Source: Epithemia pelagica
Lineage: Eukaryota > Protista > Bacillariophyta
DNA length: 64,000 bases
Reading direction: 5' to 3'
NCBI GenBank assembly: GCA_946965045.2
Contig: OX337241.1
Span: forward strand, 2,728,001 to 2,792,000
Shown here: positions 11,259-50,049 of the stretch, in pieces
How positions within the stretch are numbered: the first letter of the stretch is position 1
How the letters are laid out: each line of letters starts with the position of its first letter
Translations under genes and position numbers: made by a program
Notes under the pieces: model-generated
The model's input: only the letters and a program-made list of their open reading frames with translations
Databases searched by the model: none
What the model was told of the DNA's origin: nothing

Positions 11259-11815
11259 CGGCCGAGCACCGCAGCAAAGAAGCGCCACCATGGTGGTGGC
11301 GGACCAACCAAGAACGACGACCAAGAAGGAGGCGCTTTGGTGATTGTCTTGTTGGGACACACACTCACAACAAGTTGCCATGGCAGCGCGTTTCTCTCTT
11401 GTGTGTGTGTGTGTGAACGAGTATGTATGTGGTTGTCGTTGTCGTCATCCCACAAATCCGCCTCGGGTGGTGGTGGTGCTTGGAGAGAACGGACACACAC
11501 ACATGGACTCGTTCCAAACCTAAAACAACACAAGTGTGTGTTCCAAACCGCGCAACGACGACCCGAATGCGCTTCCTCCCATCCATCCTAATGCCCTCTA
11601 GTGTGTGCGAGGAAGAGCCCTGACAAACACACATACACATACATCACCACAACCATGAAGAAGAATCCCAACCAATACACACACTCGAGAGAAGACATGA
11701 CTAGAGCAACCACAACTACGATTCGAAAAAAAAAGAGTGGTTCACTTTTTTATCCTGACCAGAACCAAACCAACCAACCGTCGGATTGTTGGATCAACAG
11801 CACAAAACCTACACC

Positions 11816-26629: not shown

Positions 26630-27724
26630 TCATGTCGAGGTGGAGAAGCAATTCGAATCAGCATCTCGGGTCCCCATTCCTTCCAGTGAATGAAAACATC
26701 CGTTTGGATGCTGCTCGCAGAGTCGCTGAAAACACCATGTATTCTTGTCCATCAGTGGTAATGTCGCACAGGATGGATTGACAACTCCACCAATCACGGC
26801 AACTTGATTGGCAACAGTCACCATAGAGCAGTTTTCATGGCGATTTTCGAATGGTGGGAGATTCCACGTGCGGTTGCGGTGCGTGTCCCAGACTTCCACG
26901 GTTTGATGGCTTCCACCCGCCACCACCAGACAGGATCCCATGGTAGTCATTGTACATGAACCCCGAGGGGCAGAAAACACCAGATCAGAGTGAGTCGTCC
27001 AGCTAGACAAGGAGGAAATGAATGTAGACAGAGTGTTGTTTCTCTTCTCATTGTCACTAGGCGTTCCAAAGTCCAAATACTCTACTGTCGAGCCTCCAAC
27101 GACAAAGATGCGGTGGTCAACGACCGCACTGGCACAAAATAATCGAGGAACAGTCATATTTGGCCCCGCAATGACAGTTTGGTTGCTAGTATCAAGAATA
27201 TCCACCGACGACAAGCTTTGCTCTCCATCCCATCCACCCATGACTACAAGGTATCTATTGTGAACCACAACAGCACAACATCCGTTTCTTCTTATTGATA
27301 GTCGACAATTCAAAGTTGTCCAATGACTCTCATGCGTGCTGCTTGATGTCGAAGATTGTTGTAGCAAATCGCTGGCATTAATTTGTTCGATACAATCCAG
27401 AGTGTTTCCATTATATCCTCCCATCACGTATATGCCTCCATTGCACCCAACAGCGGCAAGTCCGTTACGGCTCTTGTTCATGGGTGGTCCTACGCGCCAC
27501 TGCTTGTTTCGTTCTGCTAAATTCAATATAAGCACGGAATTGGTGGCACCTTCTTGTTTCACTCCTCCCATCACGACGACCGTATGATCGAGTACAACCG
27601 ACGCATGAAACGCACGAAATCCTCCCTCAAGTCCCTCAAGAGAAGGCCAATCGTTTTCATTCCATTCTACTCTCTCTTCCGAAAGGAAAAGTCCCGACTT
27701 GTGTGCTTGTTCTTTCAGTGTCAT
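26630..27724 (-). CDS. Kelch-repeat-only protein, paralogue 1
   Basis: Kelch blades GG..-W..GPPMNKSR, YVMGGYNG..LDCIE, VVMGGWDG..LSSVDILD and IFVVGG. ATG at 27724. Confidence 0.9.
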   Translation of the reverse strand: MTLKEQAHKSGLFLSEERVEWNENDWPSLEGLEGGFRAFHASVVLDHTVVVMGGVKQEGATNSVLILNLAERNKQWRVGPPMNKSRNGLAAVGCNGGIYVMGGYNGNTLDCIEQINASDLLQQSSTSSSTHESHWTTLNCRLSIRRNGCCAVVVHNRYLVVMGGWDGEQSLSSVDILDTSNQTVIAGPNMTVPRLFCASAVVDHRIFVVGGSTVEYLDFGTPSDNEKRNNTLSTFISSLSSWTTHSDLVFSAPRGSCTMTTMGSCLVVAGGSHQTVEVWDTHRNRTWNLPPFENRHENCSMVTVANQVAVIGGVVNPSCATLPLMDKNTWCFQRLCEQHPNGCFHSLEGMGTRDADSNCFSTST

Positions 27725-30336
27725 GTTCACGGTTCCAAACGTTGACTGCAGAATTTATGAGGATCGAGACACTGTATTGTTAGAGGTTCTTGGGTTTGCT
27801 GCTGCTCTGATGGGTGTGGACTGGAATCACGACTGACTTGACGAAATGTGGATGGATCGAAACACGAGCGATGGGTACTCGTAGCTTTCGTCGCGAGGCA
27901 AATCGTGACCGAAATACACCTCACGCGAGACAGGCAACAAATGGCAGGATTGGTGCGATTCGTTTCCGTCAATTGAAATTGTACTTGCTTCTTCTTGTGC
28001 TGCATCTCTTGGCCTGTATCGGAGCGAACGAATGCCTTGCTGTTGGAATGGTATTCGATACTTGAGTTGGTGGTGTTGGGTTTCTTCAGAGCAGGAGCAT
28101 TAACACACGATGTCAGTGGTAATTCGTTGTCCGTAGTATGATTCGTCCTGTGTTCTCATGTCTGTTATTTTGACCAGGACCTCTGTCTCTGCTTCTTCTT
28201 CTCTTCATCGTCTCTTCTTCGTCGTCGTCTCATCTCCTTCTTGTCATTCCTGTCGGGTCTATCGAAGATACACCCAGCACAACGTCGAAACAGGCAAAAT
28301 ATTTTCCCGATGCATGCAAAGGGTGCGCGATTGCAAGGTGGTTCGGTGTCTGTTACTAGAAGCAACGGCAGGTCGAGACAGACGAAAATGTAGTGATGGA
28401 ATCCATGATGCGGCCTTGCAATCTGCATGCTTTGGTTGGAAACTTGAGACTCGAGAGATACGGATGAGCACACCAAAACATTCATCGTCCATTGTCGATT
28501 GTCGTCGACGACGGTCTGGCCCGACGTCGTCTGCCCGTTGAACAATCACCAGAACGTCTTGTCCACATCAGGCTCTGCTGCTTTCTGTCTCGTCTTGTTT
28601 CACATTTACAACGATCACTCGATACGAAAAGCCCCGACTTCCATGCTTGTTCTTTTGCCCCGTGTCATGGCCATGGTGAACTTTTTCATGCGTCCGCCAC
28701 GTACGGAGGACGGACGGTCGATCAAAACGTTGATGAAAGGCGAGCGCTGGGGGGGGGCAAACAATAAGCGACGAAACACCCTTTTTTGCGTTCACCCCCA
28801 AATCCCAATATCAGTTTGTATCTTTTGCATCACTCTTTGTGTGATTATACATCCTCACAGCTCGACGCATCATCTGTCAATGGTGGAGAAGAAGGTGGTA
28901 TGGTTTTGCGTTGGAGGAACCAGAGTGGCGTGAAAAAGCCACCTGCAATCGTGGAGTAGAAATGTGTCCATCTGCAGCATGACAGCACTCTCCTTTTGTG
29001 GGGAGAGGCAAGACAAAGAAGCTGCAACGACTGTGTGGGTCCAACCGTCCACCATTGTGGCCACTGGGCCGTTTGGACCGCTGGAAAGAACCGCCGACAA
29101 CTTTTTTTTCACCACCAAACGATGCCACGCTCTCGATTCTAATGACTTTCGACAACAAGGAACTGCGGTGATGGTATGGCGATTGTTGCTCCACAGTAAG
29201 GGTTCGTGCTCTTGACTTGGTCACGGTGGCCATCGTTTCATGGATGCATCAGACTTGTGCCATGCTTGGTGGACACCCATACGAATGAGTGAACAAGTCA
29301 CCTAGTTTGTCGGCCCCTATCACGTTCCAGACAAATCCTCTCGATTTGTACTTGCCGTCGCAGCCGCCATATGCTTGATCAGGACCCGTTGGCCACCACT
29401 GTCACTGGTCCCAAAATTCACCATGAATGGCACCACCACACCAGTACCAAGTCGTCATTCCTGTCGGATCTGTCGGATTCGGGGAGCATCCCCTGCCACA
29501 TGGATTTTCCGTTGTACGGTCCACCTTTTGGATTGATGACTGACTGAAACGATGCATGGGTTGTGCGGTAATATGAATCTTCCATTGACCATTTCGTATG
29601 ATGCATGTATATCATGACTGTCGTACTGACAAGGAGAGATCAGGAGGTTCCACAACGACGAGAGAGCTACAGCAACAACAGGCTTGGCGGTGGGTCGAGC
29701 GACTTGTGTAGCACCACTACCACGATCCATCGCAACAAAACACGCCGCGTCAAGAGCGAGGTAGTTTGGCGGAGGATATCACGACGACTCTTTCACCTTA
29801 GGTCGCCCTTTTGAAGGCGGCGGTGTCACCTTCCCACACGAAAAGAGACAATCATACCATGCGTTGCACTGCGGCCATCGTGTATAGGACACACGATGAC
29901 GACCAGCTCATGTCTGGGCAACCACACCGAATAGCCCTCGTCTGCGACGACCGGACAAAGCTCTTGTATTCTTGAATGCACTACAAGATAATCACAATCA
30001 GTCTTTCTTGACACTTGTTCTCTTCGCTCAGTAACATTCGGCGTGAGCTCTCATAGCTTGCCAAAAGCCATGATCTACTGATGATTGAGGAACCTAGATC
30101 ATGGCAGTTCCTCTATACAACCACGGACATGCTTCAAAAGTTGTCCCAACCTTTGACAGATTGTGTTGCTGAAGTTGATTTCCAATTTGAGATTAGATTA
30201 ACTACTAGGATATTCACGATCTCAATAGCTTAGCGATTCCATATCCTTTGTTCGAGAGTTTACTTTCCATGCTATTAGTGTTTCCACGGTCTTGGACATG
30301 CAACCTGTTGTCCGATTTCAAGTGCCATCCTTTTCT

Positions 30337-31527
30337 TTATGACAATGGAATGCGTGAATTGGTCCTCACACGTTTACCGGTTGATACCGAGGTGGAGCAG
30401 GATGTAACATTGATTTCCCGGATACCCATATCTTCCAGAGAATGGAACCATTCGTTGGGATTCTGCTTACAGAGTTGACGAAAGCACCACGTATTCTTGT
30501 CCATCAGTGGTACTGTCGCGCAGGTAGGATTGCCACTTCCACCAATCACGGCAATTTGATTGGCAACACTCACCATAGTACAGACATTGCGGTGATGACG
30601 GAATGGTGGGAGATTCCACATGCGGTTGTGATGTGTGTCCAAGATTTCCACAGTTCCATTGTTTTCCGCCACCACCAGACAGAATCCCACGGTAACCACT
30701 GCACAACAATGCCGTGGGTCGGAAAGTACCAGATCAGAGTGAGTCGTCCAGCCAGACAAGGAGAAAATGAATGTAGACAGAGTACCGTTTCTCTCCTCAT
30801 TGTAGCAGGGCTTTGCAAAGTCGAAAATTTCCACCGAGTCAAGATCGCCGCCCTCGTTAAAGCCTCCAACGACAAAGATGCGGTGACCAATGACCGCACT
30901 GGCACACCATAGTCGTGGAACAGTCATATTTGGTCCCTCTATGACCGTGTGGTTGCTGGTATTAACAATATCCACCGACGGCAAAAAACGACCGTTGTGT
31001 CCACCCATGACAACAATATATCGATTGTGAACCGCAACAGCACAAACTCCTTCTCGAACCGTTGATAAGCAACATGTCAATGTCGTCCAGTGACTCCCAT
31101 GTGTGGTACTGTTTGTCAACGAAGATTGCACGACATCATTGGCATCAATTCGTTCCACACAATCCAACAACGAATAGTAGTTATTGCGTCCTCCCATAGC
31201 GTAGATGCCTCCATTACACACAACAGCAGCATGTCTATAACGTTTCTGGTTCATAGGCGGTCCTTCTCGCCATTGCTTGTTTGATTGTGCTAAGTTCAAT
31301 AACAAAACGGAGTTGACAAAGCCTTTGTGTTGTTGTCTTCCTCCCAACACCACGACCGTCTGTCCATTGTTGTTATTGTCCTGATCGGGATGATCCAGTA
31401 CGACTGACGCATGATCGTGACGCCATCCACCCTCGAGAGGAGGCCAGTCGTTTTCATTCCATTCTGCTCTGTCGTCCGATAGAACAAGGCCCGACTGCCA
31501 TGCTTGGTCTTTCAGTGTCAAATTCAT
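30337..31527 (-). CDS. Kelch-repeat-only protein, paralogue 2
   Basis: 396-aa ORF collinear with paralogue 1; kelch GG..W motifs. Confidence 0.9.
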   Translation of the reverse strand: MNLTLKDQAWQSGLVLSDDRAEWNENDWPPLEGGWRHDHASVVLDHPDQDNNNNGQTVVVLGGRQQHKGFVNSVLLLNLAQSNKQWREGPPMNQKRYRHAAVVCNGGIYAMGGRNNYYSLLDCVERIDANDVVQSSLTNSTTHGSHWTTLTCCLSTVREGVCAVAVHNRYIVVMGGHNGRFLPSVDIVNTSNHTVIEGPNMTVPRLWCASAVIGHRIFVVGGFNEGGDLDSVEIFDFAKPCYNEERNGTLSTFIFSLSGWTTHSDLVLSDPRHCCAVVTVGFCLVVAENNGTVEILDTHHNRMWNLPPFRHHRNVCTMVSVANQIAVIGGSGNPTCATVPLMDKNTWCFRQLCKQNPNEWFHSLEDMGIREINVTSCSTSVSTGKRVRTNSRIPLS

Positions 31528-33173
31528 GGTTCCAAACGGTGACTGCAGACCATGGTCGGTGAACTCGAGTTACAATATATCTATATATATGCGGGCAGGA
31601 ACGTCCACCACGTACAGAGGACGGACGGTCGATCGTTGGCGGTGAGGGGGGGGCGCACACCCCTGTTTTGAGTTAACCCCCAAATCCCAATATCTTTGTT
31701 CGGGTGGGTATATCTTTTCACAAGAGAAAAGCTCACGGTCGGTGCAATGAACAGCTCGACCGATCATCTGTCCATGGTGGAGAAGAAGGTTTGGTTTTAC
31801 GTTGGAGGAACCAGATGTCGAAACCCATGGTTTGTGGCGGACAGGAGCAAACCATGTAGTCACTCGATTGCACTACGATTATGACGACTACACCCAACAG
31901 CAACAACAACCACAAACTGGCCCAGCTTCTACCCATAAAAACAACAACAACAACAATCGTCACATGCACAACAGGCATTCTGTTTTGTCCTCCTTCTTGC
32001 TATTTCCGATATCAGTGAATGAATGGTTTCGATCGACGCATCAATAACTTGTAGTCCAAATGACAACAACCACAACCATCAGTCGGTTATGGTTATTTGG
32101 AACAAGGGCCACCACCAGCACAGCCTTGGGAATCGTAACATCACCATATATTAATAACCGCGTCGACAGGTTTGGGGCTCCGCAAAGACATTGGCACCAA
32201 GAAAGAGGAACCAACAACGACCCTTCATAACGACAAAACACGAGTCAAAAACGACAATGGCACCACTACAACGACATCTACAATGCTCATTTGGTATGAT
32301 GCATCAGCATCGGACCTTTGGATCCCCTTGTTTCGTCATTTTTGTCGGAGTCATCGAACATGACCATGAACCACACGACAAAACAAGGCACGGACAGATA
32401 CAGAGACTCATGGTGCGTGGTGGAAGCGAGCAAAGTTCAAGTATCCAAGGAGCAAAGACCACGCAGTCCTTCGATTGCCCTACAATGATGACAACAACAC
32501 CCAAAAACTCTTTCATCAAGGAGAGCACGGCAAGAGCTGAAAACTCAGGATTCTTTATCCACCAACAGCACCAATACAACAATCGTCGTAAACACAACAG
32601 GCATCCCGTTTTGTCCTCCTTCTCGCAATTTCCAGAAATTGGAAGGAATGAATGCTTTCGATGGAGACACAATTCAGGCCGTTCCTTCCACGTCCAAAAG
32701 ATGCAGCGAGACCATCAAAGACCGTCGTCATTAATCGAAAGATGAGTCATTCTATTCCAGACCAGAGAGTATTCAACACCAAAGAGAGGAGCGGGACCAT
32801 GGTCATCCACCCAAGAGTGATTGCCAGAAATCCGCTAGGTAGTTTGCAGAGGACAGCAGACGCTGTAACATCTCATTACGGATAGCTTACCATGGCCAGA
32901 GGGGTGCGACTGCCGCAGACGCCATCGCATCAGAAAGAAATTCATGTGCGGTCATATGCTATAAGGCGGTGCTTCGAACATGCTAGGAGTTTCTCTCTAA
33001 TCCCTGAACCTAAAACTATACGATTAATAATGTAATTAAGAACTGCCACGATGTCCTGTTTTGTATGAGAGTATAATGACCATGATACAGTTTCCGGGCT
33101 CTTGGACGTGTAACGTGTTGGACATTTCAACTGCCATGCTTCCCTTTGTCGCAATCACAATCATCTAAGGTCC

Positions 33174-34343
33174 TCAATCGTTTAAGAGTCGACGACGAGA
33201 TGGTGCAGGATCTCCGTTGCCCGATCTTTCATGACAATGATACCATTCAATCCAAGGCTGCTGGCAGAGTTGACGAAAACACCATGTATTCTTGTCCATT
33301 AGTGGTAATGTCGCAGAGGACGGATTGCCCATTCCACCAATCACTGCCATTTGATCCGCCAGAGTCACTGCACTGCAGCCATCGCGCCTTTTCTTTCCCA
33401 ATAGCGGGAGATTCCACACGCAGTTGCGGTTCGTATCCAAGACATCCACAGTTTGATTGGCTACCCCTCCCGCCACCACCAGACAGGATCCCACAGTCAC
33501 CACGGCACAAGAACTTCGTGCTCTGGAAAGCACCACCTCAGAATGAGTGATCCACGTGGACGAGAAAGAAATGAATGTTGAACCACTCTCCTCCTTTGTA
33601 TCCTCATTGTCACAAGGTGTTGCATAGTCCAAATACTCCACCGAGTCAAGAAAGGCGCCCTCGTTATAGCCTCCAACGACAAAGATGCGGTGGCCAGCGA
33701 CTGCACTGGCACAAAATGATCGGGGAACATTCATGGATGGCCCGGCAGTGACAGTATGATTGCTGGTGTCAATAATCTCAACCGAGGACAACCAGTGTGA
33801 GTTCCATCCCCCCAGTACAACAATGTATTGATTGTTTACCGCCACAGCACAACAACCACATCGTCGCGTTGATAACCGGCATGTCAATGTCGTCCAATGA
33901 CTCTCATGTGTGCTCCTTGTTGTGGAAAGTGATTTCAGCAAATTGTTGGCATCCATTCGTTCCATACAATCTAACACTGGATTTTCACGATTCCATCCTC
34001 CCATCACGTAGATGCCTCCGTTGCACACAACAGCGGCATGTTCCTCACGGCTCTTGTTCATGGTCGGCCCTTCTCGCCACTGCTTGTTTGATTCAGATAA
34101 GTTCAATACTAGAACGGAACTGGTGGGCCCTTGGCCTTGCTGATTTCCGCCCATCACGACAACCGTTTGTCCCTTGTGGTTGCGATTGTCGTCCTTATTA
34201 TCGCGATGATCGAGTACGACTGACGCATGAAAGTCTCGCGCTCCACCCTCGAGAGGAGGCCAATCGTTTTCGTCCCATTCTACTCTCTCGTCCGATAAAA
34301 CAAGGCCCGACTGCCATGCTTGTTGTTTCAGAGTCATGGTCAT
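33174..34343 (-). CDS. Kelch-repeat-only protein, paralogue 3
   Basis: ATG 34343 (MTMTLKQQAW); kelch motifs as in the other paralogues. Confidence 0.9.
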   Translation of the reverse strand: MTMTLKQQAWQSGLVLSDERVEWDENDWPPLEGGARDFHASVVLDHRDNKDDNRNHKGQTVVVMGGNQQGQGPTSSVLVLNLSESNKQWREGPTMNKSREEHAAVVCNGGIYVMGGWNRENPVLDCMERMDANNLLKSLSTTRSTHESHWTTLTCRLSTRRCGCCAVAVNNQYIVVLGGWNSHWLSSVEIIDTSNHTVTAGPSMNVPRSFCASAVAGHRIFVVGGYNEGAFLDSVEYLDYATPCDNEDTKEESGSTFISFSSTWITHSEVVLSRARSSCAVVTVGSCLVVAGGVANQTVDVLDTNRNCVWNLPLLGKKRRDGCSAVTLADQMAVIGGMGNPSSATLPLMDKNTWCFRQLCQQPWIEWYHCHERSGNGDPAPSRRRLLND

Positions 34344-35190
34344 GGTTCCAAACGGTGACTGTAGATTAATGAGGATCAAGACACACTGTACTGTGAGAGG
34401 TTCTTAGGTTGGCTGCTGCTCTGATGGGTGCGGACTGGAAGCACGACTGACTTGCCGAAATGGATGGATCTTATCACGAGCGATGGGTAGCTTTCGTCAC
34501 GAGACAAACTGTGACAGTAATAGTCACACCAAAGGAAGAACCCCACGCGGAAGGTGTTGGATGATATCGAAATAATCTGCTCGCGGCGAGACAAACAACT
34601 AATCCTTTCAAAATTCGCAGATCAAGAAAGTATTGGTGCGATTCGTTTGCATCATTTTGTGGTTGTGGTAAAGCTCCACAGTCTGTCTGGTTGTTGGTTC
34701 CCAACGAATAAGCAACAACACTGCAGAGGCCGTGGATGGAGAGACATGGGTAGTTTTGCACGTCGGGGAAGGAATTTGCTTGAATGAGACGGTGATTCAA
34801 CCGGTTGTTGTTGGCGCTGCTCTTGTTGTTTCATCCTGCAAGTACTGCTGGTCGTGAGTTCAATATCGTAGTGTTGTACAAGGTGATTCGACCTGTTGTT
34901 GTTCCATCCTGTGATTAGTACTGCTGGCGGTCGGTGCAATGCCTCAGCATTCCAGATGACTATGGCTGTCTATCATTGTCGTAATACGACTTGTCCGGTC
35001 ATTGTTGTTTGCCAGTCCCTCCCAGCGAGTTTCAATTTGTAGAACCCCAGCGGCGCAATACAAAGGACTAGGGCCCTGCTGCTACCGGGTCACGACATGG
35101 CTTGCTAATACGATGCATGCAAACGGTAACAGGACGACGGTTTGTTTGTCTCTCGTTGCTGCTGTTGCTGTTGTTGTTGTGTGGTGTTCG

Positions 35191-35276
35191 TGTTGTGCTT
35201 AGTATCGGAATGATTGAGTACGACCGTAGTCGTCATGCTAGGGTCGTACTTAATCATCCCGATAATAAGGACGACA
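35191..35276. other. Kelch-derived hairpin A (40-nt arms, 6-nt loop), candidate small-RNA precursor
   Basis: Arms 35191-35230 and 35237-35276 pair with 33 WC, 3 G:U and 4 mismatches on the + transcript. The right arm matches kelch-3 sense sequence (34182-34229). Confidence 0.6.
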
Positions 35277-35909
35277 ATCATTGCGCTACATTTCAGTAAA
35301 GCGGTAAAAGGACCGTAGCCATCGTAGCTATTATACTCCAATGAACACAAAACTCACAAGAACGCGTGGAAGCTGTTTGACCTTTTGTGGTGTCTGTCAT
35401 GCGTCCACAGAAAGGAGATCGCACATAAACTACATGACAGAAAGCAGATCTTTTTTGTGTCCATCCAAAGCTTTCTCGCTCTATAAAATCAATGGTTCTC
35501 CCCTCTATGTATGCATGGAGATGGTAGATTCATGTCCCTCTTTACAAAGACAACGTTGTGCCGGAGGTATCCTTCTTCCTGACACAACAACACAACAGTA
35601 ACAACAAGTCCAAAAGGTCACAGCCGCTCGGTACGTTGAAAAACAAGAGTTGAATCGTTCTCTGTCTCGTTCTACTATTAGTTTTACAAGGAAACCTACA
35701 TTGGATACTCATCTCTCGTCTCTTTCACAGGATTGTCCTTCTCTTGTTTAACAAAAACAGACTGCAGTATGATTCGTTGGGAACGGAACATGGTCAGATC
35801 CGATCCAGTCCTGGTATTGGTTGCTACACAGGGTGATGTTGTCTGATGCTGCACACAGGGATAGTAGCGTTGTCGTGGTGGTGGTGGTTGATGGTATACC
35901 GAATGCACA

Positions 35910-38900
35910 CTAGGTCGAAACGACCCAGACACCACCCAATCCGTGCGAGAGGAGAGCGAGACTTTCGGGCGATTCCACGACAAACAAGAAACAGACACGC
36001 GAATTGCGCCATTCCGACTGCGCCGAACAAAACCATTCGGCCACAACTGCTTCCGTCGACCACTGCTCCAATACGACCAACCATTCATGGGGCGTCGGTG
36101 GCAAGGCTTCCAAGACGGCCAAGACATGATCGGAGGCATTCGTAGTCTTGTGGTTGTTGGTGGTGCTGCTGCAGAGTTCCGTACGCGGCACAAAGGTGGT
36201 TGTGGTGGACGTCCAACACTCTTGGACGACCGTGTTGTAATCGTGCAACAAGGTTTCGGCGGAACTGGCATTGAGGGGCAAGACATCGCGATGGGGAGCG
36301 GCTTGTTTCCAGGCATGGGCAATGGAGCGAGCAATGCTGCGACACGAAGTAGTCGTGGTGGACGTGTCCTGACTTGTTGTCAATGCCACGGGAAAGCCCA
36401 CAAAGTCCAACTTTTCCAAGACGGAATTCAACACGGTCGGTTCCACGGCAATGACACCATTGGTTTCATCCAATTGAGGAATGCCGGGAGGAGGAAAGAC
36501 GACGGCCTTCTTTTGTGTAAGTTGCCGTGATGGTTCGGGAACAGGTACTGTCATGGTTGTGGTGGCAACAAGACTTGGTTCCTTGTTGTTGTTGTTGTCC
36601 TTGTCGTCGTTCTTGTCCAGTGGCACGATCGGGTCCGATTGATGGGTGGGTTCCTCTGGGACTTGGTTTGGGGGCACAGCACTGTCCTTGTTGCTAACGT
36701 CATTCTCAGACGAAATGTCCTTTGGTGACGACGTTGCCGGGGTCGGTGTCGTGGGCTGTTCCACTTGCAAGGTATCGTAGCCCAGAGGGTCTTGCAAAAA
36801 GTGTTGCGGCGTCTGACCCTGGCCATCGGCTTCCGTCAAGAGAGCGGGAAACTTGGTGGTCAAGAATTGAACGCATCCCGTCGCATGGGCTTGACAGGCC
36901 AAATGAATCGGCAAGATACCCTGCGCATTGCATTGCTGCGCCAATTCGGGAGCCAATTCGACCAACAATCGTACCACCTCCAAGGACGAGGCGACATCCT
37001 CCTCCTCGGCCGTCTCCTCCTCCATGACGGGTGCTTGAACTGCCGACCGTGTCGATTTGTCATCGTCGTCGTCATCTTCCTTGGGCCATTCCGGTTTGAC
37101 GTCACACTCCAAGTGCAACAAGGTATTGCGATTGACATGCGTCAGCAGGTAGAGGAAGGCATTGCGATTGGTGCGTGAAGATGACTCCTCCACAATGGAC
37201 AAAGTGTTGTTGGTGGTCGTCATGCCAGAATTGGACGCCGCCTCGGTCTTGTCAATCAAGAATTCCACAACATCAAGCGACGCGCGATGAGCACAGGCCG
37301 AATGCAAGGGCAACCACCCTTGATGATTGGCAATCACTTGGGGAGGTGGTGTACAATCGGCCAAGGCGACAAAGAGTTGGACCGCTTGGAGGGATGGTTT
37401 GTGACTGCACAAGACATGAAGGGGACGATTGCCAATGGCATCGACCGGCTCTTGCAAGATCCATGGTACGCTTTGCAGGGTTTCTTGGGTGCGACGCAAA
37501 TTTAGGGCTTGCGCATCACGGCAGGTGCGATGAAATTGATGCAACTCTTCTTCCTTGTCTTCCCAGGACTCGGATGCCGATAGCAATTTGTCTTGTGTGG
37601 GTTTCTGGGACGAGGTTCCCGGCTGTCCAGGAGTACCACCACCACCCGATGCTGGTGTGGTGGCAGTGCTGGCCCCGGTTCCTCGTGGTGTCGTCGTCAT
37701 GGAAGCGGAATTGGAATGATTGGCCATGGACAAGTTGTAATTTTGCTTGTGTCGAGAGGATCCGAGCACCAAGGTTCGCGGCATGTGCGATCGTGGTGTC
37801 GGTCCCTTTCCTGCTCCTCCGGCAGGAGTCCCACGTCGGCTGCTGCTGCCACGAAAGAGACGTTTGAGCAAGCTCTTTTTGCGTCCTCCTTCCGATGCTC
37901 CTCCTCGTGTTTCGGTATGATAGGACGATACCTCGTCCTCGACGGGTGCGGCGGGGGAAAACAACCGACGACCACTACTACTCTTTTCCCGTCCTACACT
38001 GCGTCCTCGACTGTAACTGGCTTCGCGCTGTCGACGACTCGTGGTACTTGTTGTGTTGGCCGTTTGGATACTGCGCGTGCTGCTTTTGCGACTGCGCGTA
38101 CTTCGAGTACTGCGCGTACTTTTGGTGCTTCGGGAACTCCGATTGCTCTTGTTGATGCCCACGGACCAATCGTCGTCGCCACCACCCGTCAAGAAGCCAC
38201 TCAAGGACCGATTGCTGAAGCGACGCAAAAATTGTCGACCTCCACCAGTCGGAGCAGCATCCTCCGAGGAATCCAGAACGACGGGGGCCGAAATGCCAAA
38301 GGATTCGCAAATGTCCAAGCCACTGCCCCCGGAAACGAGGAGCATGGAAAGTTGGGGAATGGTCACGAGGGAACAGCCACATTGGACATGAGCCAGATCC
38401 GGCAAGCTCCAGACGACGTTGCGTTGGGGATCACCACTTGGACGGACGACAAGTGCGAATGGCCATTGTCTTCTCCACCGGCCACCACCAAACAGTGTCC
38501 CAAGACGGTCAGTCCGTGTCCACACCGTGCCACTGGCAAGGACAAGTCCGGTCGTTCCTTCCAGGCAAAGGAGGCAAAGAGCGCGCGAAAGGGATCCTTG
38601 TTTCGTTTGGGAGGCGGTGTGGCATGAAATTCCAAACTGGCCACGGAATTGGTGCACGTGTTATCCTCCCGGCGGCCCCCGACAATCCAAATTTCGTTCC
38701 CCACCACAGCGGCGCCAAACCGACGACGATCAATCGACATGGGGGGACCCGGTACAACGGCTGCCAAATTGCTCGTGCCACCGGACGACAATTCTTGGTC
38801 TCGGGCCAGGTGGGTATCGACAATGTCGACCGAACAATCATTTTGCGCTCCACCGCCCATGACAATAATATAGCGGTTGTGAACCGAGACGGCGGCACAT

Positions 38901-39982
38901 CCGGACCGGGGCATGGACAAGCGGCAGAACAAGCGGGTCCACACGGGTGTCGCTGCGGACGACGACAAGGACGGATCGTGGGCTGTCGTTGTGCCGGTAC
39001 TCTTGTGAGAGGCGACGGATTGATCGTCGCTCATCATGGCAGAAGAATTCAGTACCATGGCATCCGTCATGGCACCACCCGTCACCAAGGCGGTATAATC
39101 GACCGTGAGGTATTCCAGCGTATCCAAACTGGCCGTCCCATTCATGCCTCCAATGGCATAGAGGGCAGCGGCAGCAGCACCACCACCACACCGAACCGTG
39201 GCAAAGTTGGTACGGGCCTGCGTCATGCTCGGACCGGCTCGCACAAATTGACGCTTGGCCGGATCCAAGACCACGGTCGAAGCCGTGGCGGCGCCTTCTT
39301 GGTATCCACCGAGCAAGAGGACCAAAGTGTCGGGAAAGTTGGTATAGGGACGTTGTTTGGTATTGGTCGTGCCGGCTGGCACGGGTGGAGATGTGTCGTA
39401 CTCGTCGTCTGGTTCCATGTCGTACAGGTAATCGGATCGATGCAAGACGAGGGAGGAATGGTACCAGCGCCATCCCCCCAAAATGGGCGGCCAGGCATCA
39501 ATGTTCCATTCGGCCGCCGCCGCCGCATCCCGTCCTCCTCGTGACGAAGAGTTTCGGGGGGATGGTACGGTCATGCCCGACAAGGCGGCATGTTCCCGCC
39601 ACGACAAGGAACTCGGCGGAATGGGGGCAGTGACCATGCCTTCGCCCATGCCACCGGTATCTCCGTAGCCGTAGGGATTGCAATCGTCTTGCAGTGCTGG
39701 TTCTTTGTCTGGTCGTTGTTGTGGTGGTGGTTGGTGGGCCACCACTCCTGGATTGGGTTGCACTTCTCCTGGATACAATTGCAACGAATTGGGTCGTTGC
39801 AATTCGCCGGGCACCACGTGCCGAATTTCTTGTTTTTCCTCTGGTTCGTGGGTGAGATGGCCCGAGGGATGATGATCACTCCAATTGTCCTCTCCCTGTT
39901 CCAATTCCTCACTCATGTCAAACGTCAAGGCACTGTCGTGCATGGGGTGGTGATTCGGATGCGGATCTTGAACCGACAACAT
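35910..39982 (-). CDS. Kelch - disordered linker - ankyrin repeats - degenerate NB-ARC-like protein (~1357 aa), one -1 frameshift at ~38433
   Basis: The kelch ORF 38363-39982 continues as (V)DPQRNVVWSLPDL...CSLV in ORF 35910-38657. Ankyrin motifs GNRPLHVLC, GWLPLHSAC and GILPIHLAC at ~36800-37450. The C-terminus has LNASSAETLLHDY...EWLVVLEQW...GGVWVVST. Confidence 0.7.
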
Positions 39983-40790
39983 GATGATAATGATGGAACA
40001 CTGTCACGAAAGTCAAAGCGTTTCGTGGTTGGACTGTTGGTTCGACCGCACCGAAACTGAGAACCGAAACGCCAAACTTTGTATCTCTAGAAAAGAGCTC
40101 CTGAATTTTGTGGGAGTGTGTGTTCGACGACGAACCGACCACACACACACACACCTCTTCTCTGTGAGTTTGACAGGGACACATCCGGACAAGACACACG
40201 GAGTTGACAAACAAGGTCGTCGCTGGATTGGGAATCCGCAGTTCGACGACGAGGACGAGAGGAGTGTCTTGGGGGCGGAGGGTTCTTTCGGCACTCGTTG
40301 TTCCAGTTCTCGAGCAAGGTTCGAGTCGAACTCCCCCACCAATCGTTCGACAGGAGCGGTTCCGGATGGACCTGCCCAAAAGATTCGTTTCGTCATTTTG
40401 TGAGAATCTTTCTCAGCGTTGAAACTTGAAACACAGTTTTGTGGCCGGATTGTTCGGGAATACACAATGCTGGGTCGGTTTGTATTGCCTGGGGGTTCTC
40501 CATCTCATTGAGTTTTGCCTCTTGTCTATAGCCCGTTCGATGGGCAATGATTCAAGCTTGCGCAAGTCGCGACGGGCAGACGGAAAAGGAACCCTCTACG
40601 AGCGACCCCAAGGCGTCTCATCTGCTGGCGAATTTGAAAACTACCCCTCCCAAGGATCAAAACTAGGATAGCTAGAGGAGTACCGACCAACGATGGTTAC
40701 GGTCCTTTTACCGGTTTACTGAAACCAGGACCATAACACAAGCAGGGGAGTCGGGCCTTGTCGTCCTTTTGTGCGAGACACCGCAATGAT

Positions 40791-40890
40791 TGTCGTCCTT
40801 CTAGTATCGGGATGATTGAGTACGACTGTATCATGGCGAGAGAGGCATGCTACAATCGTACTCAATCATTTCGATACTAGAAGGACGACA
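40791..40890. other. Kelch-derived hairpin B (45-nt arms, 10-nt loop), candidate small-RNA precursor
   Basis: Arms 40791-40835 and 40846-40890 pair with 41 WC, 2 G:U and 2 mismatches on the + transcript. The sequence matches the kelch ASVVLDH.D..DDN coding segment. Confidence 0.65.
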
Positions 40891-41726
40891 CTCACAACAA
40901 CAACAGCAACAGGCAACAGCAGCAACAAGAGACAAACCGTCGTCGAGTTACCATGTACATGCACCGTATGAGCAAGCCATGTCGCAACACGGCAGCAACA
41001 GCAGGGCCCTAGTCCTTTGGATTGCTGGGGTTCTATTATTTGAAACTCGCTGGGAGGCACACCACGACGCTAATAGGACGACCCATGACGAGAATTGTAG
41101 GATGACGAGGAATCGGAGGAAATGGAATGCCCGGACCAGTAGTACTACGACAATGGCAGACAGCACAGTCATTCAGAACACTGAGGCATTGTGATCACAT
41201 TGCACCGAGGACCAGCAGTACTATAATCACAGGATGGAACAACAACAGGTCGAATCACAATCCCTCCACAGTGTTGCTTATTCGTTGCGAACCAACAACC
41301 AGACAGACTGTGAAGCCTTTTCAATGCATGGTTGGAACACGACACTATACAGTACTCTACTGCCCATTGCAAGTGGCATGCGCACCCACCACAAACTGAC
41401 TGGAACGAATCGCACCAATCCTGCCATTTCTGTTCTGAGACTCGTGCAAGGATACCAGTGGTTGTCTCTCTCGCCGTAAGAATTTTATTTCGATATCCAG
41501 TCACTTCCACGGTCTTTGGAATTCATAGGATGCGTGGTCTTCTTCAGTGCGTGACTATATACGGTCACGAGTTGTCTCGTGACGAACCTCTTTTCTAGAT
41601 CCATCCATTTCGTCAAGTCAGTCCGTACCCATCAGAGCATTACCGCAGCAAGCAGCAGCAAACCCAAAACCCTCTCACAATACAGCTTCTCGATCCTCAT
41701 CAGCTCTGCAGTCAACGCTTGGAACC

Positions 41727-42884
41727 ATGACCATGACACTGAAAGATCAAGCATGGGAGTCGGGGCTTATTTTATCGGACCAGACACCTGAATGGAATGA
41801 AAACGATTGGCCCCCTCTTGTAGGTGGATGGCGTTCGCATCATGCATCGGTTGTACTCGATCATACGGTCGTCGTGTTGGGTGGATACAAACATTTGCAA
41901 CATAATGTCAATTCCGTTCTTGTATTGAATTTAGCTAAACCAGACAAGCAGTGGCGACAAGGGCCATCCATGAACAAGAAACGTTCTGGACATGCCGCTG
42001 TTGTGTGCAACGGAGGTATATACGTGATGGGAGGATTCAATGGATATTCAAAGTTGGATTGTATGGAGCAAATTGATGCCAACGATTTGCTACAACCATT
42101 GTCGACATCAAGCATCACGCATGAGAGTCATTGGACGAAATTGAAATGCCGATTATCAACGGGACGGAATGGATGTTGTGCCGTTACGGTGAAGAATCGA
42201 TACATTGTTGTACTGGGGGGATGGGATGGAGGGCACAGGTTGTCGTCGGTGGATATCATTGATACCAGCAATCACACTGTCATTGCGGGACCAAATATGA
42301 ACGTTCCACGTAAATGGTGTGCCAGTGCGGTCGTTGGCCACCGCATCTTTGTCGTTGGAGGCTCGACAGTAGAGTATTTGGACTTTGCAAGGCCTAGTGA
42401 CAATGCGGAGAGAAACGACACTCTGTCTACATTCATTTCCTCCTTGTCTGGTTGGACGACTCACTCTGATCTGGTACTTTCGGCCTCGCGAGATTCTTGT
42501 GCAGTGGTTACCGTGGGATCCTGTCTGGTGGTGGCGGGAGACGATCAAACTGTGGAAATCTTGGATACGCATCACAGCCGAATGTGGAATCTTCCACCAT
42601 TCAAGAATGGTCGTGCAGACTGCTCTATGGTGACTGTAGCCGATCAAGTTGCGGTCATTGGTGGATGGCATAATCCATCCTGTGCGACATTACGACTCAT
42701 GGACAACAATACGTGGTGCTTTCGTCAACTCTGTGACCAGCCTCGGATTGAATGGTATCATGGTCTGGAACGATCGGGCAACGATGATGTCAATGATACA
42801 TTCTCCACCATCTCGTCGTCGACTTTTAAACGATTGAGGACCTTTGATTATTGTGATTGTGACAAAGGGAAGGATGACAGTTGA
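41727..42884 (+). CDS. Kelch-repeat-only protein, paralogue 4
   Basis: 385-aa ORF starting MTMTLKDQAWESGL; inverted counterpart of paralogue 3. Confidence 0.9.
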   Translation: MTMTLKDQAWESGLILSDQTPEWNENDWPPLVGGWRSHHASVVLDHTVVVLGGYKHLQHNVNSVLVLNLAKPDKQWRQGPSMNKKRSGHAAVVCNGGIYVMGGFNGYSKLDCMEQIDANDLLQPLSTSSITHESHWTKLKCRLSTGRNGCCAVTVKNRYIVVLGGWDGGHRLSSVDIIDTSNHTVIAGPNMNVPRKWCASAVVGHRIFVVGGSTVEYLDFARPSDNAERNDTLSTFISSLSGWTTHSDLVLSASRDSCAVVTVGSCLVVAGDDQTVEILDTHHSRMWNLPPFKNGRADCSMVTVADQVAVIGGWHNPSCATLRLMDNNTWCFRQLCDQPRIEWYHGLERSGNDDVNDTFSTISSSTFKRLRTFDYCDCDKGKDDS

Positions 42885-44412
42885 AATGTGCAACAGCTTA
42901 CACGGCCAAGAGCCCGGAAACTAGATCATGGGCCATTATACTCTCATACAAAAGAGGAGATCGTGGCAGTTCTTAATTACATTATGACTCATATATTTTT
43001 AGGTTAAGTAATTCGACAGCAAGTCCTTACATGTTTGAAGCACCACCTTATAGCATATGACCGCACATGAATTTCTTTCCGATGCGATGGCGTCTGTGAC
43101 AGTCGAACCCATCCGCCATGGTCAGCTATCCTTGTAGCAAATAATGAGATTTTACAGCGTCTGCTGTCATTTCTGGCAATCACACTTGGGTGGATGGCCA
43201 TGGTACCGCTCCTCTCTTTGGTGTTGAACACTCTCTGGTCTTGAATAGAATGAATCATCTTTCGACGGTTTTTGATGGTCTCGTTGCATCTTTGGGACGT
43301 GGAAGGAACGGCCTGAATTGTGTCTCGATCGAAAGCATTCATTCGTTCCAATTTCTGGAAATTGCCAGAAAGAGAACCAAACGGGATGCCTCTTCAAACG
43401 GGATGCCTCTTGTGCATGCGAGGATTTTGTTGTTTTGGTGCTGCTGGTGGATAGAGAATCCTGATTTTACAGCTCTTGCCGTGCTCTCCTTCATGATAGA
43501 GTTTTTGGGTGTTGTTGTCATTATTGTAGCGCAATCGAAGGACTGTGTGGTCTTTACTCCTTGGCTCCATGAACTTTGCTCGCTTCCACCGCGCACCATG
43601 AGAGTCTCCATATCTGTCCGTGCCTTGGTTTGGCGTGTGGCTCCTATGTTCGATGAATCGCGGACAAAATGACGAAACGGGCGGATCCAAAGGTCCGATG
43701 CTGATGCATCATACCAAATGGGCATTGTAGATGTCGTTGTAGTGGTGCCATTGTCGCTTTTGACTCGTGTTTTGTTCTTATGAAGGGTCATCGTTGGTTC
43801 CTCTTTCTTGGTGTCAATGTCTTTGCGGAGCCCCAAATCTGTCGACGCGGTAAATATAAGGCGATGCTACAATTCCCAAGGCCGTGCTGGTGGTGGCCCT
43901 TGTTCCAAATAACCGACTGGTTGTGGTTGTTGTCATTTGGTCTACAAGTTATTGATGCGTCGATCGAAACCATTCATTTGCTAATATTGAAAATAGCAAG
44001 AAGGAGGACAAAAAGGATGCCTGTTGTGCATGTGACGTTTGTTGTTGTTGTCGTTGCTGGTGGGTGTAGTCGTCATCATCGTAGTGCAATCGAGTGACTA
44101 CACGGTTTGCACCTGTCCGCCACAAACCATGGGTTTTGACATTTGTTGGTGTTCCTTATTTTGGCTTGGTTCATGGTCGTGTCCGATGAATCCGACAAAA
44201 GAACGTCTCCACACTTCTCCTCCCCTTGCAATCAACATTGCCATTGAACGATCATGTGTGGGGAAACCGAAGTGCATGGTTGGTGTGTAGAGGACGGATC
44301 ATCACCACTGCACTTTTGTGTTGATGATTGAGTAAGGTACTTGCGGAGGATTCTGGTTATCATGATGGCTTTTCGCGGTCCGTGCAAGGGTGCTTCTTCT
44401 TGGAAATCCTGG

Positions 44413-44692
44413 TGTTGGAACCTATTGTGGCCTGACTGATGGTCGCCCTTATAACGGTCGGGATTAGCGCTGTGGCCTCTATAACGGTCGGGATTAGCGC
44501 CTTGGGATTCGACTACTGGGGAAACTATGTACGGGATCAGGTCATATGAATGGGAGTCGAAATAGGTCTTACTCCCACGGGGACACAAACAAACACAGAA
44601 TACGATTAGGATAACGAAAACAAAATATTAGTAATGAGATCATAAGTTTGGGAAAAGAAAACCTAATAGGCCAGTCTTAAAGTGTTCTAGCA
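44413..44692 (+). repeat. 5' LTR
   Basis: tgttggaacc...gttctagca. No difference from the 3' LTR by eye. Contains an internal tandem tataacggtcgggattagcgc x2. Confidence 0.97.
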
Positions 44693-44727
44693 CGCTTCGA
44701 AGCGAAAGGAGATCGCTCGAGACAACA

Positions 44728-47700
44728 ATGGCTACGGTAGACGACTTATCATTAAAGCATCTACGTTTGCAGACGTTCGATGGAAAGCATGAAAATTTCC
44801 AAGTTTGGTTCATGAACTTTCGTTCATATGCAGTGGCGCATGGATTCAAGTCGGCGATCAGCAAAGATGGGCCTGACACTGACTTGCCTTTGCGGGATGA
44901 TTCACCTCTCGATACCGATGCAACAGTGGCGGGAAAACAAGCTTTGGCCAAGAAGAAGAATGCGGCAGCCTTTTGTGCCTTGAACCTTGCGATGACAAGC
45001 CCTCAGATGATCCGAATGTTGACCGAAGCTCAGACGGATGAATGGCCCGATGGTTTGGCCTGGAAGGTGATTGCTGCATTGCACAAGAGATTTAAGCCGA
45101 CAGACACTGTATCGAAGATCGAGATGCGAAGGTTGTTGGGTAAAGTGGCCATGACCAAGAAAGAAGATCCGACTACTCTGTTCAGCCAAATTGGGCAGAT
45201 TGAAAATATGTTCAACGTGACGGTTGATGATGAGGAGAAAATTGCGATCGCAATTGAGGCAGCTCCGCGAGAATACCAGTCGATTATTGTGTCCGAGCAA
45301 CGCCAGCGGGGTGCGACATTGACGTCGGACCACATTGAAGACGTTATGCGGTTGCACTGGCGTGCACTTTATGGTCAGCGCACCAAGAATTTCCTGCAAG
45401 ACGACGGAGACGAAGACAACGAAATTGGTCTCGCAGCTGGAGACAAACAAGGTTCAACGTCAGGAAAGTCAAAATCAAGCAAGAAAAGTGGGAAAGGAGA
45501 CGGCAAGAAGACTTACAAATTCAAGGGCAAGTGCCATCATTGCGGAAAGGTCGGGCACAAGGCAGCAGACTGCTGGATAAAACCCGAAAACAAAGATAAG
45601 AGGCCCGAATGGTACAAGGTCGAGGAGCATGGCAAAGTAGCAAAGGACAGTGGTGAGACGGATGTCGAAGGCAGCGTCGAAATCATCACTTGTGCGGTCG
45701 ACTTACCTCCACGGAACATGGTATGGTTAGATACCGATGACGAGGACGATCACAACGAATACGAAGAACTCCCTGACTCGGTACTCGATCACGAGATCGT
45801 GAGCGACACCGACGACGAAGAGACAAGAGGCGACGACGAAGACCTCGATTGGATCAGTTTGTTGGGTGAAGAGGACGATGAAAGCATCCACGACTCGTTG
45901 ATTGTTGTATCAGATGACGACGAAGAAGAAGTGGACAGGGAGATTTGTTGTGCTGGTATGGCGAAGGAAATGGAATTCCCAGCCATCCAAAGTCTCCTGA
46001 CAGATCCGAATGTATGGATCGCAGACACAGGAGCGACGACGCATATGACTCCGTTTCGCGTCGGAATGGTTAATGTGAAGAAACAACATGATGAGAAAGG
46101 GATCACCATGGGCAACAATAAAACAGAAAAGGTCGTGGAAGTTGGCAACTTACCTGGAGTGTTGCACGACAAGAATGGGAACGCGCTCAACCGTGTGAAG
46201 ATGCAAGATGTCAGCGTGGTTCCAAGCGGTGGATTCAACCTGTTCAGCATCACGAAAATGCAGATGAGTGGATGGAAATTGGAAGGAGACAAACAGTCAA
46301 TCCGACTTACCAAGAATGGGCAGGAGATCATCTTCGATATCAAGATCCAAACGCCCAAGGGAGTGATTTTCGCCGCGTATTTTGAAAGGACCGAGTTGGG
46401 AAACGCAGCGACAAGTGAAGAGCAAATCAAAATGACAATGGAACAGGCTCATGAGAAACTGGGTCACATCGGAGAGAAAGCAGTAATCGAAACAGCCAAG
46501 AAACTTGGATGGAAACTTACCAAGACAACGATGCCAAAATGTGCAGCTTGCGCAGCTGGAAAGGCAAAACAGAAGAACTTGCCGCGAAATGAGAATGGAG
46601 AAGATGACAGGGAACACGATGACGAGAAACAACTTCGTGCTTACCTCGACATGGCCTCGATCAAGAAGAAGCAAGACATGCCAATTCCGTCGAAGCCGCA
46701 GTGGAGGATCTTGGTGGTCCACCCAAAAGTCCAGCTCAAGCTTTCCGAGTTCTATGATGCGAAAGATGAGATGCCAGAGGACACATGTGAGAAAATGGCA
46801 TTGATGAAACAACATGGTGTGTCCATCACTCACCTTCGGTTGGACAATGCAGGCGAGAACAAGGCCTTGCAGAAACGGTGTCAAAATGAAAAGTGGCAAC
46901 TTGGAATCCATTTCGAGTTCACTGCCCGTGATACACCCCAGCAGAACTCTATCGCTGAGGTGGGATTTGCTACCGTGATGAATCGAGCACGTGCGATGAT
47001 GCACCGCGCTAATATTCACATCGAAATCCGCTTCAAGTTGTGGCACGAGGCTTGCATGACGGCAACGCTTTTGGACGGCTTGGTTGTTGTGGATCATGGG
47101 GGAAGATCTGCGACTCGATACGAACACATTTGGGGGAAAGTGCCAACGTTCGCGAAACACTTGCGAATTTGGGGGGAAGCCGGAACGGTCAAGATCAAGA
47201 CTAAAACTTCCCCGAAATTAATGGACAAAGGTGTACATTGTTTCTTCGTTGGGTATGCACGTAATCATCCGGGTGACTGTTATCGGATGTTTGATCCCAA
47301 AACGGGTCGTGTTCGGGAATCACGCGACGTGACTTGGCTAAAGCGGCTATACTACAAGAAACCTCCTAATGCCAAGGAACTACAAACCAATCCAGTCGTG
47401 GATGCTGAGGCTGCATCGAATCACGGGGAGAGTCGCGGAAGTGGTCGCGAAAACGATGGCCAAGACGACCATGGCGGAAACGACAGCAATGTGAACGACA
47501 ACAACTCCAACAATGAATATGAACCGGATGATCCGATGCCTGAGGTCAACATGAGCACAGGCAATGACGAATCCACGGCTCCAGTGCGGAATATTGTGAT
47601 TCCGGAGCCTGATGAAACAACGACGACGCGAACAGGTCGTACCATACGAGCACCACAACGGTTGATTGCTGAAATTGGACAAGCCGTGTTGTCCAAGGCC

Positions 47701-49389: not shown

Positions 49390-49409
49390 AGTCAGCCACA
49401 AGGGGAGGG

Positions 49410-49689
49410 TGTTGGAACCTATTGTGGCCTGACTGATGGTCGCCCTTATAACGGTCGGGATTAGCGCTGTGGCCTCTATAACGGTCGGGATTAGCGCCTT
49501 GGGATTCGACTACTGGGGAAACTATGTACGGGATCAGGTCATATGAATGGGAGTCGAAATAGGTCTTACTCCCACGGGGACACAAACAAACACAGAATAC
49601 GATTAGGATAACGAAAACAAAATATTAGTAATGAGATCATAAGTTTGGGAAAAGAAAACCTAATAGGCCAGTCTTAAAGTGTTCTAGCA
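49410..49689 (+). repeat. 3' LTR
   Basis: Copy of 44413-44692, directly after the PPT. Confidence 0.97.
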
Positions 49690-50049
49690 CCTGGGGCGAC
49701 AACGCGATCCTTTTCTTTGATTCATTCTTCAGTACTCCAATCGGACGAGGAGGGAGTGGAACTGTGCTCGGTACTTCGATCCGTAGCGTTGCGTTCCTCG
49801 TCATCGGCGCGATTCAATCCTAGGTCCGACTTGAAGCCTCTTGGAGCATTCGATGCGAACATGACGTCGCCATTCATCGGAAAATTTGTCGCTCTCCCCC
49901 AAGCAGTGCCGTCATAGATATTTCGGCTCCCCGCAAGGCGATTGCAGGTGGCTTTTCCACGCCATTCTGGTTTCGTCAACGCAAATTCAAACCTTCTTCT
50001 TCACCATTGACGGGTGATCCGTCGAGATGATTCTTTGCACCGACCGTGC

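Follow-up and report, generated by a model that had tools for sequence, protein, structure and literature searches.

NB-ARC domains (PF00931) are found in Apaf-1, CED-4, and Dark and in plant nucleotide-binding leucine-rich repeat (NLR) receptors, such as NRC2, ZAR1, and MLA13. NLRs have a tripartite order, with an N-terminal effector, a central nucleotide-binding oligomerization domain (NOD), and C-terminal repeats, the NB-ARC domain lying ahead of the repeats. NLR-like proteins that combine NB-ARC with tetratricopeptide repeats (NB-ARC-TPR) occur in fungi, actinobacteria, and brown algae, including a family in Ectocarpus (PMC3341825). Here, we analyzed a 64,000-nucleotide window of the diatom Epithemia pelagica (GenBank assembly GCA_946965045.2, contig OX337241.1, positions 2,728,001 to 2,792,000; coordinates below are those of the window) in which a minus-strand locus at 35910-39982 departs from the NLR order: kelch repeats come first, ankyrin repeats follow, and a NOD-like domain stands at the C terminus, behind the repeats. 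Judged from its sequence, the locus is one former gene of ~1,360 codons in the diatom nuclear genome. We consider it probable that this gene, comprising kelch propeller, linker, ankyrin repeats, and a pseudo-nucleotide-binding domain (referred to here as the tail), was split by a one-base deletion and is now a pseudogene, and that its ankyrin-tail module is older and conserved.

The locus is covered by two open reading frames (ORFs) in the program-made ORF list, ORF A (38363..39982, 539 amino acids [aa]) and ORF B (35910..38657, 915 aa), which overlap by 295 nt in different frames. A preliminary description of this DNA gave the same coordinates and proposed that one missing base near 38433 joins the ORFs and completes the last kelch blade. 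A natural copy of the locus carries the predicted G. This copy, L001 (ENA assembly ERZ21939226, ctg1139c; 98% identity, collinear with window 34287-44412), was reached from a word search with the tail by way of a 95%-identical protein. On the sense strand, positions 38440-38433 of the window read GTGGTGAT, whereas L001 reads GTGGTGGAT at ~38433, a single-G insertion relative to the window in a global alignment. The L001 ORF continues through the last blade into the linker (...LSSVQVVDPQRNVVWSLPDLAH...), in agreement with the kelch paralogue consensus VEVLDTxRNRVWNLP. At the junction in the window, frame A runs to ...HLSSVQVV and then loses register, and frame B resumes at DPQRNVVWSLPDLAHVQCGCSLVTIP...LLVSGG. 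The two frames combined give the last blade of the neighboring kelch paralogues (consensus VEVLDTxRNRVWNLP...GCSMVTVA..AVIGG), alignable with seven paralogues across the junction. The deletion is also present in a second contig of the same assembly (L006; 99.6% identity and no gap in 4801 nt), where the gene calls are split alike (526 aa plus 811 aa). In three public runs of this organism (X1 to X3), contigs span 37608-39118, 37830-39118, and 38037-39003 with 0 gaps; where they vary, they carry the letters of L001 or L006. Since the second assembly contig and the contigs of three runs share it, the deletion is real DNA and not an assembly slip. The parts of the locus are as follows.

38363..39982 (minus strand): ORF A; disordered His/Pro/Gln-rich N terminus, then most of a kelch beta-propeller (Kelch_1, E 3.4e-19; kelch paralogue alignment)
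35910..38657 (minus strand): ORF B; remainder of the last kelch blade, Ser/Thr/Arg-rich linker, ankyrin repeats, C-terminal NB-ARC-like domain
38432..38434 (minus strand): site of the 1-nt deletion within the last kelch blade (GTGGTGAT in the window, GTGGTGGAT in copy L001)
38283..39520 (minus strand): kelch beta-propeller, EWNIDAWPP to ...SAPVVLD, across the frameshift (Pfam, paralogue alignment)
37533..38282 (minus strand): low-complexity Ser/Thr/Arg/Gly-rich linker, ~250 aa, with no family match
36708..37532 (minus strand): ankyrin-repeat region in two blocks (Pfam; collinear with proteins P0020 and P0027, below)
36417..36707 (minus strand): acidic/Pro/Asn-rich spacer from the ankyrin repeats to the C-terminal domain
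35913..36416 (minus strand): C-terminal domain, ~168 aa, with a predicted P-loop-less NB-ARC/STAND-like (signal transduction ATPase with numerous domains) nucleotide-binding-domain fold
36153..36303 (minus strand): multicopy core of the C-terminal domain (contig depth; relic copies at other loci)
35910..35912 (minus strand): TAG stop, the natural end of the tail domain family

Both repeat classes are well supported by Pfam: Kelch_1 (CL0186) in ORF A scored 68.5 bits against a cutoff of 20.1 (E 3.4e-19), and in ORF B, Ank_2 scored 41.6 bits against 27.3 (E 1.9e-10) and Ank_5 scored 38.4 bits against 27 (E 1.5e-9). The kelch blades align with those of the paralogues, the last one being interrupted by the frameshift, and two blades carry lineage-specific inserts. 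ORF A ends in 22 out-of-frame residues past the frameshift. At ORF B, the gene caller reported only an 811-aa piece (P0001) that starts at an internal Met. Compared with paralogues in this genome that consist of a kelch propeller alone (e.g., 33174-34379 and 41727-42884), the propeller is 36 to 39% identical, with the same blade order and adjoining genomic positions. The paralogues end ~60 residues past the last blade, whereas the window gene goes on through the linker, the ankyrin repeats, and the pseudo-NTPase domain.

Next, we considered the state of the gene. Each of the four assembly copies found is damaged. L001 has lost 63 nt at 39582 and single bases at ~37512 and ~36708, and nonsense codons interrupt it at window positions 39422 and 37994; the joint of the 63-nt deletion and the 37994 nonsense change also occur as minor contigs in the runs. 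Another copy (L007) has nothing upstream of window position 37473 and abuts a Copia element. Mismatches between the window and L001 are spread over the three codon positions (25/23/28). Nonsynonymous and synonymous differences number 14 and 4 between the window and L006 and 11 and 1 among the distinct ORF B differences of the close copies, against a neutral site ratio of ~3.2:1; on these small counts, recent substitutions look neutral. Because all copies are damaged and amino acid-changing substitutions are as frequent as expected without selection, the gene appears to be a decaying pseudogene in a birth-and-death cluster of kelch genes. "Decaying," a term already used in the preliminary description, thus suits the window locus.

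Traces of the tail extend well beyond these copies. The contig depth summed at 36153-36303 is ~35 to 70 times that of the flanks, which we take only as tens of copies, a figure backed by the paralogue fragments, as the interval lies partly over Thr-codon low-complexity sequence. Tail relics, numbering in the tens, occur elsewhere in the genome on the downstream side of kelch genes (at ~500 nt in L002, L003, and L005), several of them mutually frameshifted. Ankyrin/tail relics 75 to 87% identical to the window are located as follows.

L002: 3935-4296, 7940-8546, and 16229-16492
L003: 7940-8644 and 13992-15096
L005: 8046-8790
L004: 8016-8374

All of these follow a kelch gene of the same strand at a distance of a few hundred bases, and one internal deletion (window 37069 to 36374) recurs in several. 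The shared deletion and the kelch adjacency point to amplification of a unit consisting of a kelch gene plus a decayed tail. Within the window, no tail paralogue was detected at the DNA level; one weak tblastn match (11187-11327, E 0.01) was taken as chance.

To place the tail among other proteins, we ran an exhaustive phmmer search against 1.84 billion representatives, which returned 17 proteins, most of them short fragments of the same assembly. The informative ones are P0020 of Epithemia clementina (493 aa), 40% identical to the tail, and P0027 of the same assembly (locus L008, 4001-8122, ctg1357l), an intact ORF of 1373 aa that is 35% identical and carries the tail at its extreme C terminus, behind ankyrin repeats. 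The ankyrin region is collinear as well, with 36% identity in P0020 (E 2e-32) and 27% in P0027; the ankyrin-plus-tail unit as a whole aligns collinearly among the window gene, P0020, and P0027 (E 2e-32 and 2e-26). Sequence comparison thus indicates that the ankyrin and pseudo-NTPase module is older than the window gene and conserved, being intact in E. clementina and P0027. It also bears on the TAG at 35910. P0020, P0027, P0030, and P0031 all terminate 4 to 25 residues past the same final strand, and no same-strand ORF follows the stop downstream in the window. Since the relatives finish at the equivalent point and ARC1/ARC2 are missing in all members, the TAG is the normal C terminus of the tail family rather than a truncation, and the earlier remark that the domain stops there is corrected accordingly.

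The N-terminal part of P0027 differs from that of the window gene. Its order is HET-like/TPR, ankyrin, NOD-like domain: two repeats of a ~300-aa module with a HET-like motif (YFWMDIFCVDQ/YVWIDFLCMDQ), TPR_10/TPR_12 repeats, ankyrin repeats, and the P-loop-less NB-ARC-like tail. We make no claim of HET identity for the N-terminal modules, as the Pfam HET score was below threshold (E 0.006) and the Atlas feature search gave unnamed clusters; the nearest of these group unnamed diatom, green algal, and haptophyte proteins. Word searches of proteins of 503 to 1601 aa found only the window's own product with the tail and, with the ankyrin region, generic ankyrin proteins but no kelch-ankyrin fusion, an absence that is unproven given this length range. 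A metagenome scan with the tail alignment gave 198 pattern matches, 0 of which were confirmed.

The last ~230 residues of ORF B have no Pfam match. NB-ARC, NACHT, and AAA_16 were not found at E values up to 10 in the window tail, P0020:290-493, or P0027:1190-1373; NCBIfam was blank, and PDB sequences gave nothing by phmmer and 0 matches with the profile of alignment A4 at E 10. The structural picture is different. An AlphaFold2 model of P0020:318-470 (predicted local distance difference test [pLDDT] score of 75.5, predicted template modeling [pTM] score of 0.75) has the order b1-a1-b2-a2-a3-b3-a4-b4-a5-b5. Its Foldseek matches in PDB are ORC/Cdc6, NRC3/2/1, Apaf-1 (template modeling [TM] score, 0.57 to 0.60), ZAR1, Sr35, Dark, and CED-4 (E 3e-4 to 1e-2). 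By VIA, the highest Z scores are those of NRC2 (10.1; 134/153 residues, root mean square deviation [rmsd] of 3.2 A), Apaf-1 (9.3), Sir3/ORC2 (9.0), and MLA13 and CED-4 (8.9). In the ESM Atlas, it reaches TM scores of 0.67 to 0.72 to fungal and actinobacterial NB-ARC-TPR clusters. The Foldseek and VIA matches of the window tail's own model (pLDDT, 56) are exclusively AAA+/STAND domains, and a language-model feature search gave AAA_16, nSTAND, NB-ARC, and NACHT clusters only. These predictions support an ASCE-type (additional strand, catalytic E)/NB-ARC-STAND beta-alpha core fold. Similarity of the C terminus to the P-loop NTPase fold, set beforehand as a test, is therefore present in the predicted models; the suggestion of an NB-ARC-like tail holds at the fold level by the three structure searches (Foldseek, VIA, and the ESM Atlas), with the feature search in agreement, and fails by sequence profiles, including Pfam NB-ARC membership.

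Walker A and the sensor-1 Arg have been lost, and the Walker B position is degenerate. The domain runs from strand 1 through a degenerate P-loop region and the helix IARSIAHAW to strands 2 to 5, and the peptides quoted in the preliminary description (SCRSIARSIAH, LNASSAETLLHDY, EWLVVLEQW, and GGVWVVST) are present within ORF B residues 771-915. No Walker A motif (GxxxxGK[ST]) lies between strand 1 and helix 1, and GK[ST] occurs in no member, so that the missing P-loop GKT pointed out earlier is a feature of the whole family. The P-loop position reads TTSQDTSTTTTSCRS in the window, free of glycine and lysine and with a Thr-rich insert, SCETAKDASG in P0020, and TAESTLDAAKT in P0027, which alone retains AAKT. 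Strand 2 and helix 2 (RNBS-A region; resistance nucleotide-binding site) correspond to LNASSAETLLHDY. Strand 3, at the Walker B position, is conserved (WLVVLEQW, WLVLFQNC, WLVLFENC); no acidic pair is present, a single Glu standing in two lineages and Gln in Epithemia. EWLVVLEQW lies at this degenerate Walker B position. GGVWVVST, the one misassigned motif, is strand 5 rather than RNBS-B; the RNBS-B/sensor-1 strand (strand 4) is RVCFLFVVES in the window. The sensor-1 Arg (TT/SR at the end of strand 4) is absent from FLFVVES, FLFAIS, and FLFAAS. ARC1 (GLPL) and ARC2 (MHD) subdomains are absent from all members, which stop 4 to 25 residues past strand 5.

Compared with the NB-ARC domains of Apaf-1, CED-4, Dark, NRC2, ZAR1, and MLA13, the tail shows the same order of elements and the predicted fold of the nucleotide-binding subdomain, including, where Walker B lies, a hydrophobic strand that ends in an acidic or amide residue (WLVLFEN/WLVVLEQ). 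It differs in having no Pfam match, GxxxxGK[ST], DD pair, or sensor-1 Arg; the protein stops after strand 5 and so has no ARC1 or ARC2. The best ESM Atlas structural matches are NB-ARC-TPR proteins (TM score, 0.67 to 0.72; rmsd, 2.7 to 3.5 A; 133 to 140 residues). TPR_10/TPR_12 repeats are typical of such proteins, and P0027, with these repeats and a weak HET-like motif, resembles fungal HET-NB-ARC-TPR proteins. NB-ARC-TPR families and the window family are alike in being fast-evolving, duplicated, and partly decayed. Unlike NB-ARC-TPR proteins, the window gene carries kelch and ankyrin repeats, and its domains run in the opposite order; NTPase motifs such as Walker A and the sensor-1 Arg are gone from every member of its family, and sequence similarity is undetectable. 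ORC/Cdc6 AAA+ subunits score comparably (ORC2, Z 9.0; Cdc6, Z 8.2 to 8.8; Foldseek E 3e-4), but the tail lacks their lid and winged-helix domains and has no replication context, and its origin more likely lies in a clade other than ORC/Cdc6.

Several readings of the interrupted frame compete with that of a split pseudogene. A sequencing or assembly error in an intact gene might be suspected from the short GTG/GG context of the deletion site. We regard it as virtually excluded and rejected it on the deletion state common to L006 and the X1 to X3 contigs: two assembly contigs and the contigs of three runs agree, no indel is reported, and the G-bearing copy L001 is a distinct sequence with 81 other differences. 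It is also highly improbable that the frame is restored in RNA, by a short intron or programmed frameshifting, with full-length protein still being made. Within the ORF overlap, 17 GT..AG pairs (41 to 251 nt) would join the frames without a stop; however, each would cost 14 to 84 residues from blades that all paralogues conserve, which leaves intron rescue a weak rival. The uninterrupted ancestral sequence in L001 is one G away, and no evidence of a slippery site was found. Gene fission, into a 539-aa kelch protein and an ankyrin/pseudo-NTPase protein starting at the internal Met of the 811-aa call, is better founded, though we still think it unlikely. In the window and L006 alike, the two ORFs stay open for 539 and 915 codons, and the ankyrin-plus-tail unit stands alone in Epithemia (P0020, 493 aa) and can thus function without kelch. 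Against fission, ORF A lacks most of the last blade and carries its out-of-frame end, the 811-aa start falls inside the blade remnant, nonsynonymous changes prevail (14:4 overall, 11:1 in ORF B), and all other copies are damaged too.

For the tail, the competing explanation is a lineage-specific alpha/beta domain (Rossmann- or flavodoxin-like) that is not derived from an NTPase, with the NB-ARC matches reflecting a common three-layer arrangement. We judge this improbable. It would account for the lack of a profile match to any P-loop family and of any retained catalytic motif, and the alignment is shallow, with middling VIA Z scores of the kind usual for alpha/beta folds. However, the top matches of three structure searches and the feature search all fall in one clade (STAND/ORC AAA+), NB-ARC ranks first with 128 to 140 of 153 residues aligned, and P0027 has TPR_10/TPR_12 repeats and AAKT where GK[ST] would lie. 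Some points weigh against the split pseudogene with an NB-ARC-derived tail that we favor. No sequence-profile method ties the tail to NB-ARC or any P-loop family, and the Z scores of 8 to 10 are only modestly higher than the background of 7 to 8 stated by VIA. The AlphaFold models come from shallow alignments of 11 to 12 rows, mostly close paralogues, and the window's own tail domain models poorly. An intact full-length kelch-ankyrin-tail gene was not found in any genome among proteins of 503 to 1601 aa. Finally, both ORFs being long and open in two copies is compatible with separate function after fission, and the single-nucleotide polymorphism counts behind the neutrality reading are few.

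The surroundings of the locus show several further features. Kelch-only genes of ~385 to 400 aa, whose propellers are related to that of the broken gene, lie at ~26630-27860, ~30280-31540, 33174-34379 (minus strand), and 41727-42884 (plus strand), and every paralogous locus examined has a similar cluster with two to four kelch genes per 16 kb. A Copia-type long terminal repeat (LTR) retrotransposon occupies 44411-49690; its two 283-nt LTRs show 100% identity, and its 1553-aa ORF (RVT_2, E 3.8e-32) is intact. The 98%-identical L001 lacks this element, indicating a very recent and polymorphic insertion. At 35945-36107, a minor contig in all four runs (depth, 15 to 99) swaps 161 nt for an unrelated 39-nt stretch and is probably another diverged tail copy. 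L001-type variants at 39119-39199 and 39771-39856 make up about one-fourth of the total depth in the runs. This proportion fits the presence of the locus as three to four copies or haplotypes in the sequenced strain and in the assembly (the window contig, ctg1194l, ctg1139c, and a partial ctg1303l).

Under the split-pseudogene reading, the ancestral protein would have consisted of a disordered N terminus, a kelch propeller, a Ser/Thr/Arg-rich linker, ankyrin repeats, a spacer, and an NB-ARC/STAND-core domain of 150 to 170 residues. From this domain, the Walker A loop would have disappeared along with the acidic pair of Walker B and the sensor-1 arginine, with ARC1/ARC2 lost or never present. 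In the window haplotype, the single-base deletion in the last kelch blade splits the gene in two; sister copies share this deletion or bear other lesions. Ligand-binding surfaces would be provided by the kelch and ankyrin repeats. The tail most likely acts as a nucleotide-independent interaction or oligomerization surface because it cannot be expected to bind or hydrolyze nucleotide in the canonical way. Catalytically inactive AAA+-type folds serve as structural subunits without hydrolysis in ORC/Cdc6, and the tail may resemble such dead ORC subunits. The "pseudo-NTPase scaffold" of the preliminary description fits the intact relatives.

A link to NLR-type defense or cell death is at this point a hypothesis only; the only pointers to a defense role are ancestry and, in P0027, the TPR and weak HET-like features, the latter without confirmation in the Atlas. 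Tentatively, and with considerable doubt, the ankyrin plus P-loop-less, ARC-less NB-ARC-like module may be an undescribed diatom family derived from NLRs of the NB-ARC-TPR type, its NOD now a nucleotide-independent assembly domain. Its front ends would be HET-like/TPR (P0027), kelch (the window gene), or none (Epithemia), the kelch branch having expanded and decayed like resistance genes, and its members would be diatom defense or cell death receptors with reversed domain order. Diatoms face viruses, oomycetes, and chytrids, and to our knowledge, their intracellular surveillance proteins are almost unknown; our literature search found no paper describing an NB-ARC/NLR-like family in diatoms. 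For annotation, the two gene calls of the locus should be merged as one pseudogene. The usual traces of gene turnover are gathered in a single cluster: a fusion, joint amplification with kelch genes, internal deletions, lesions that arose independently in haplotypes, and an adjoining polymorphic retrotransposon. The module itself offers a testable candidate for the reuse of STAND domains as pure assembly modules.

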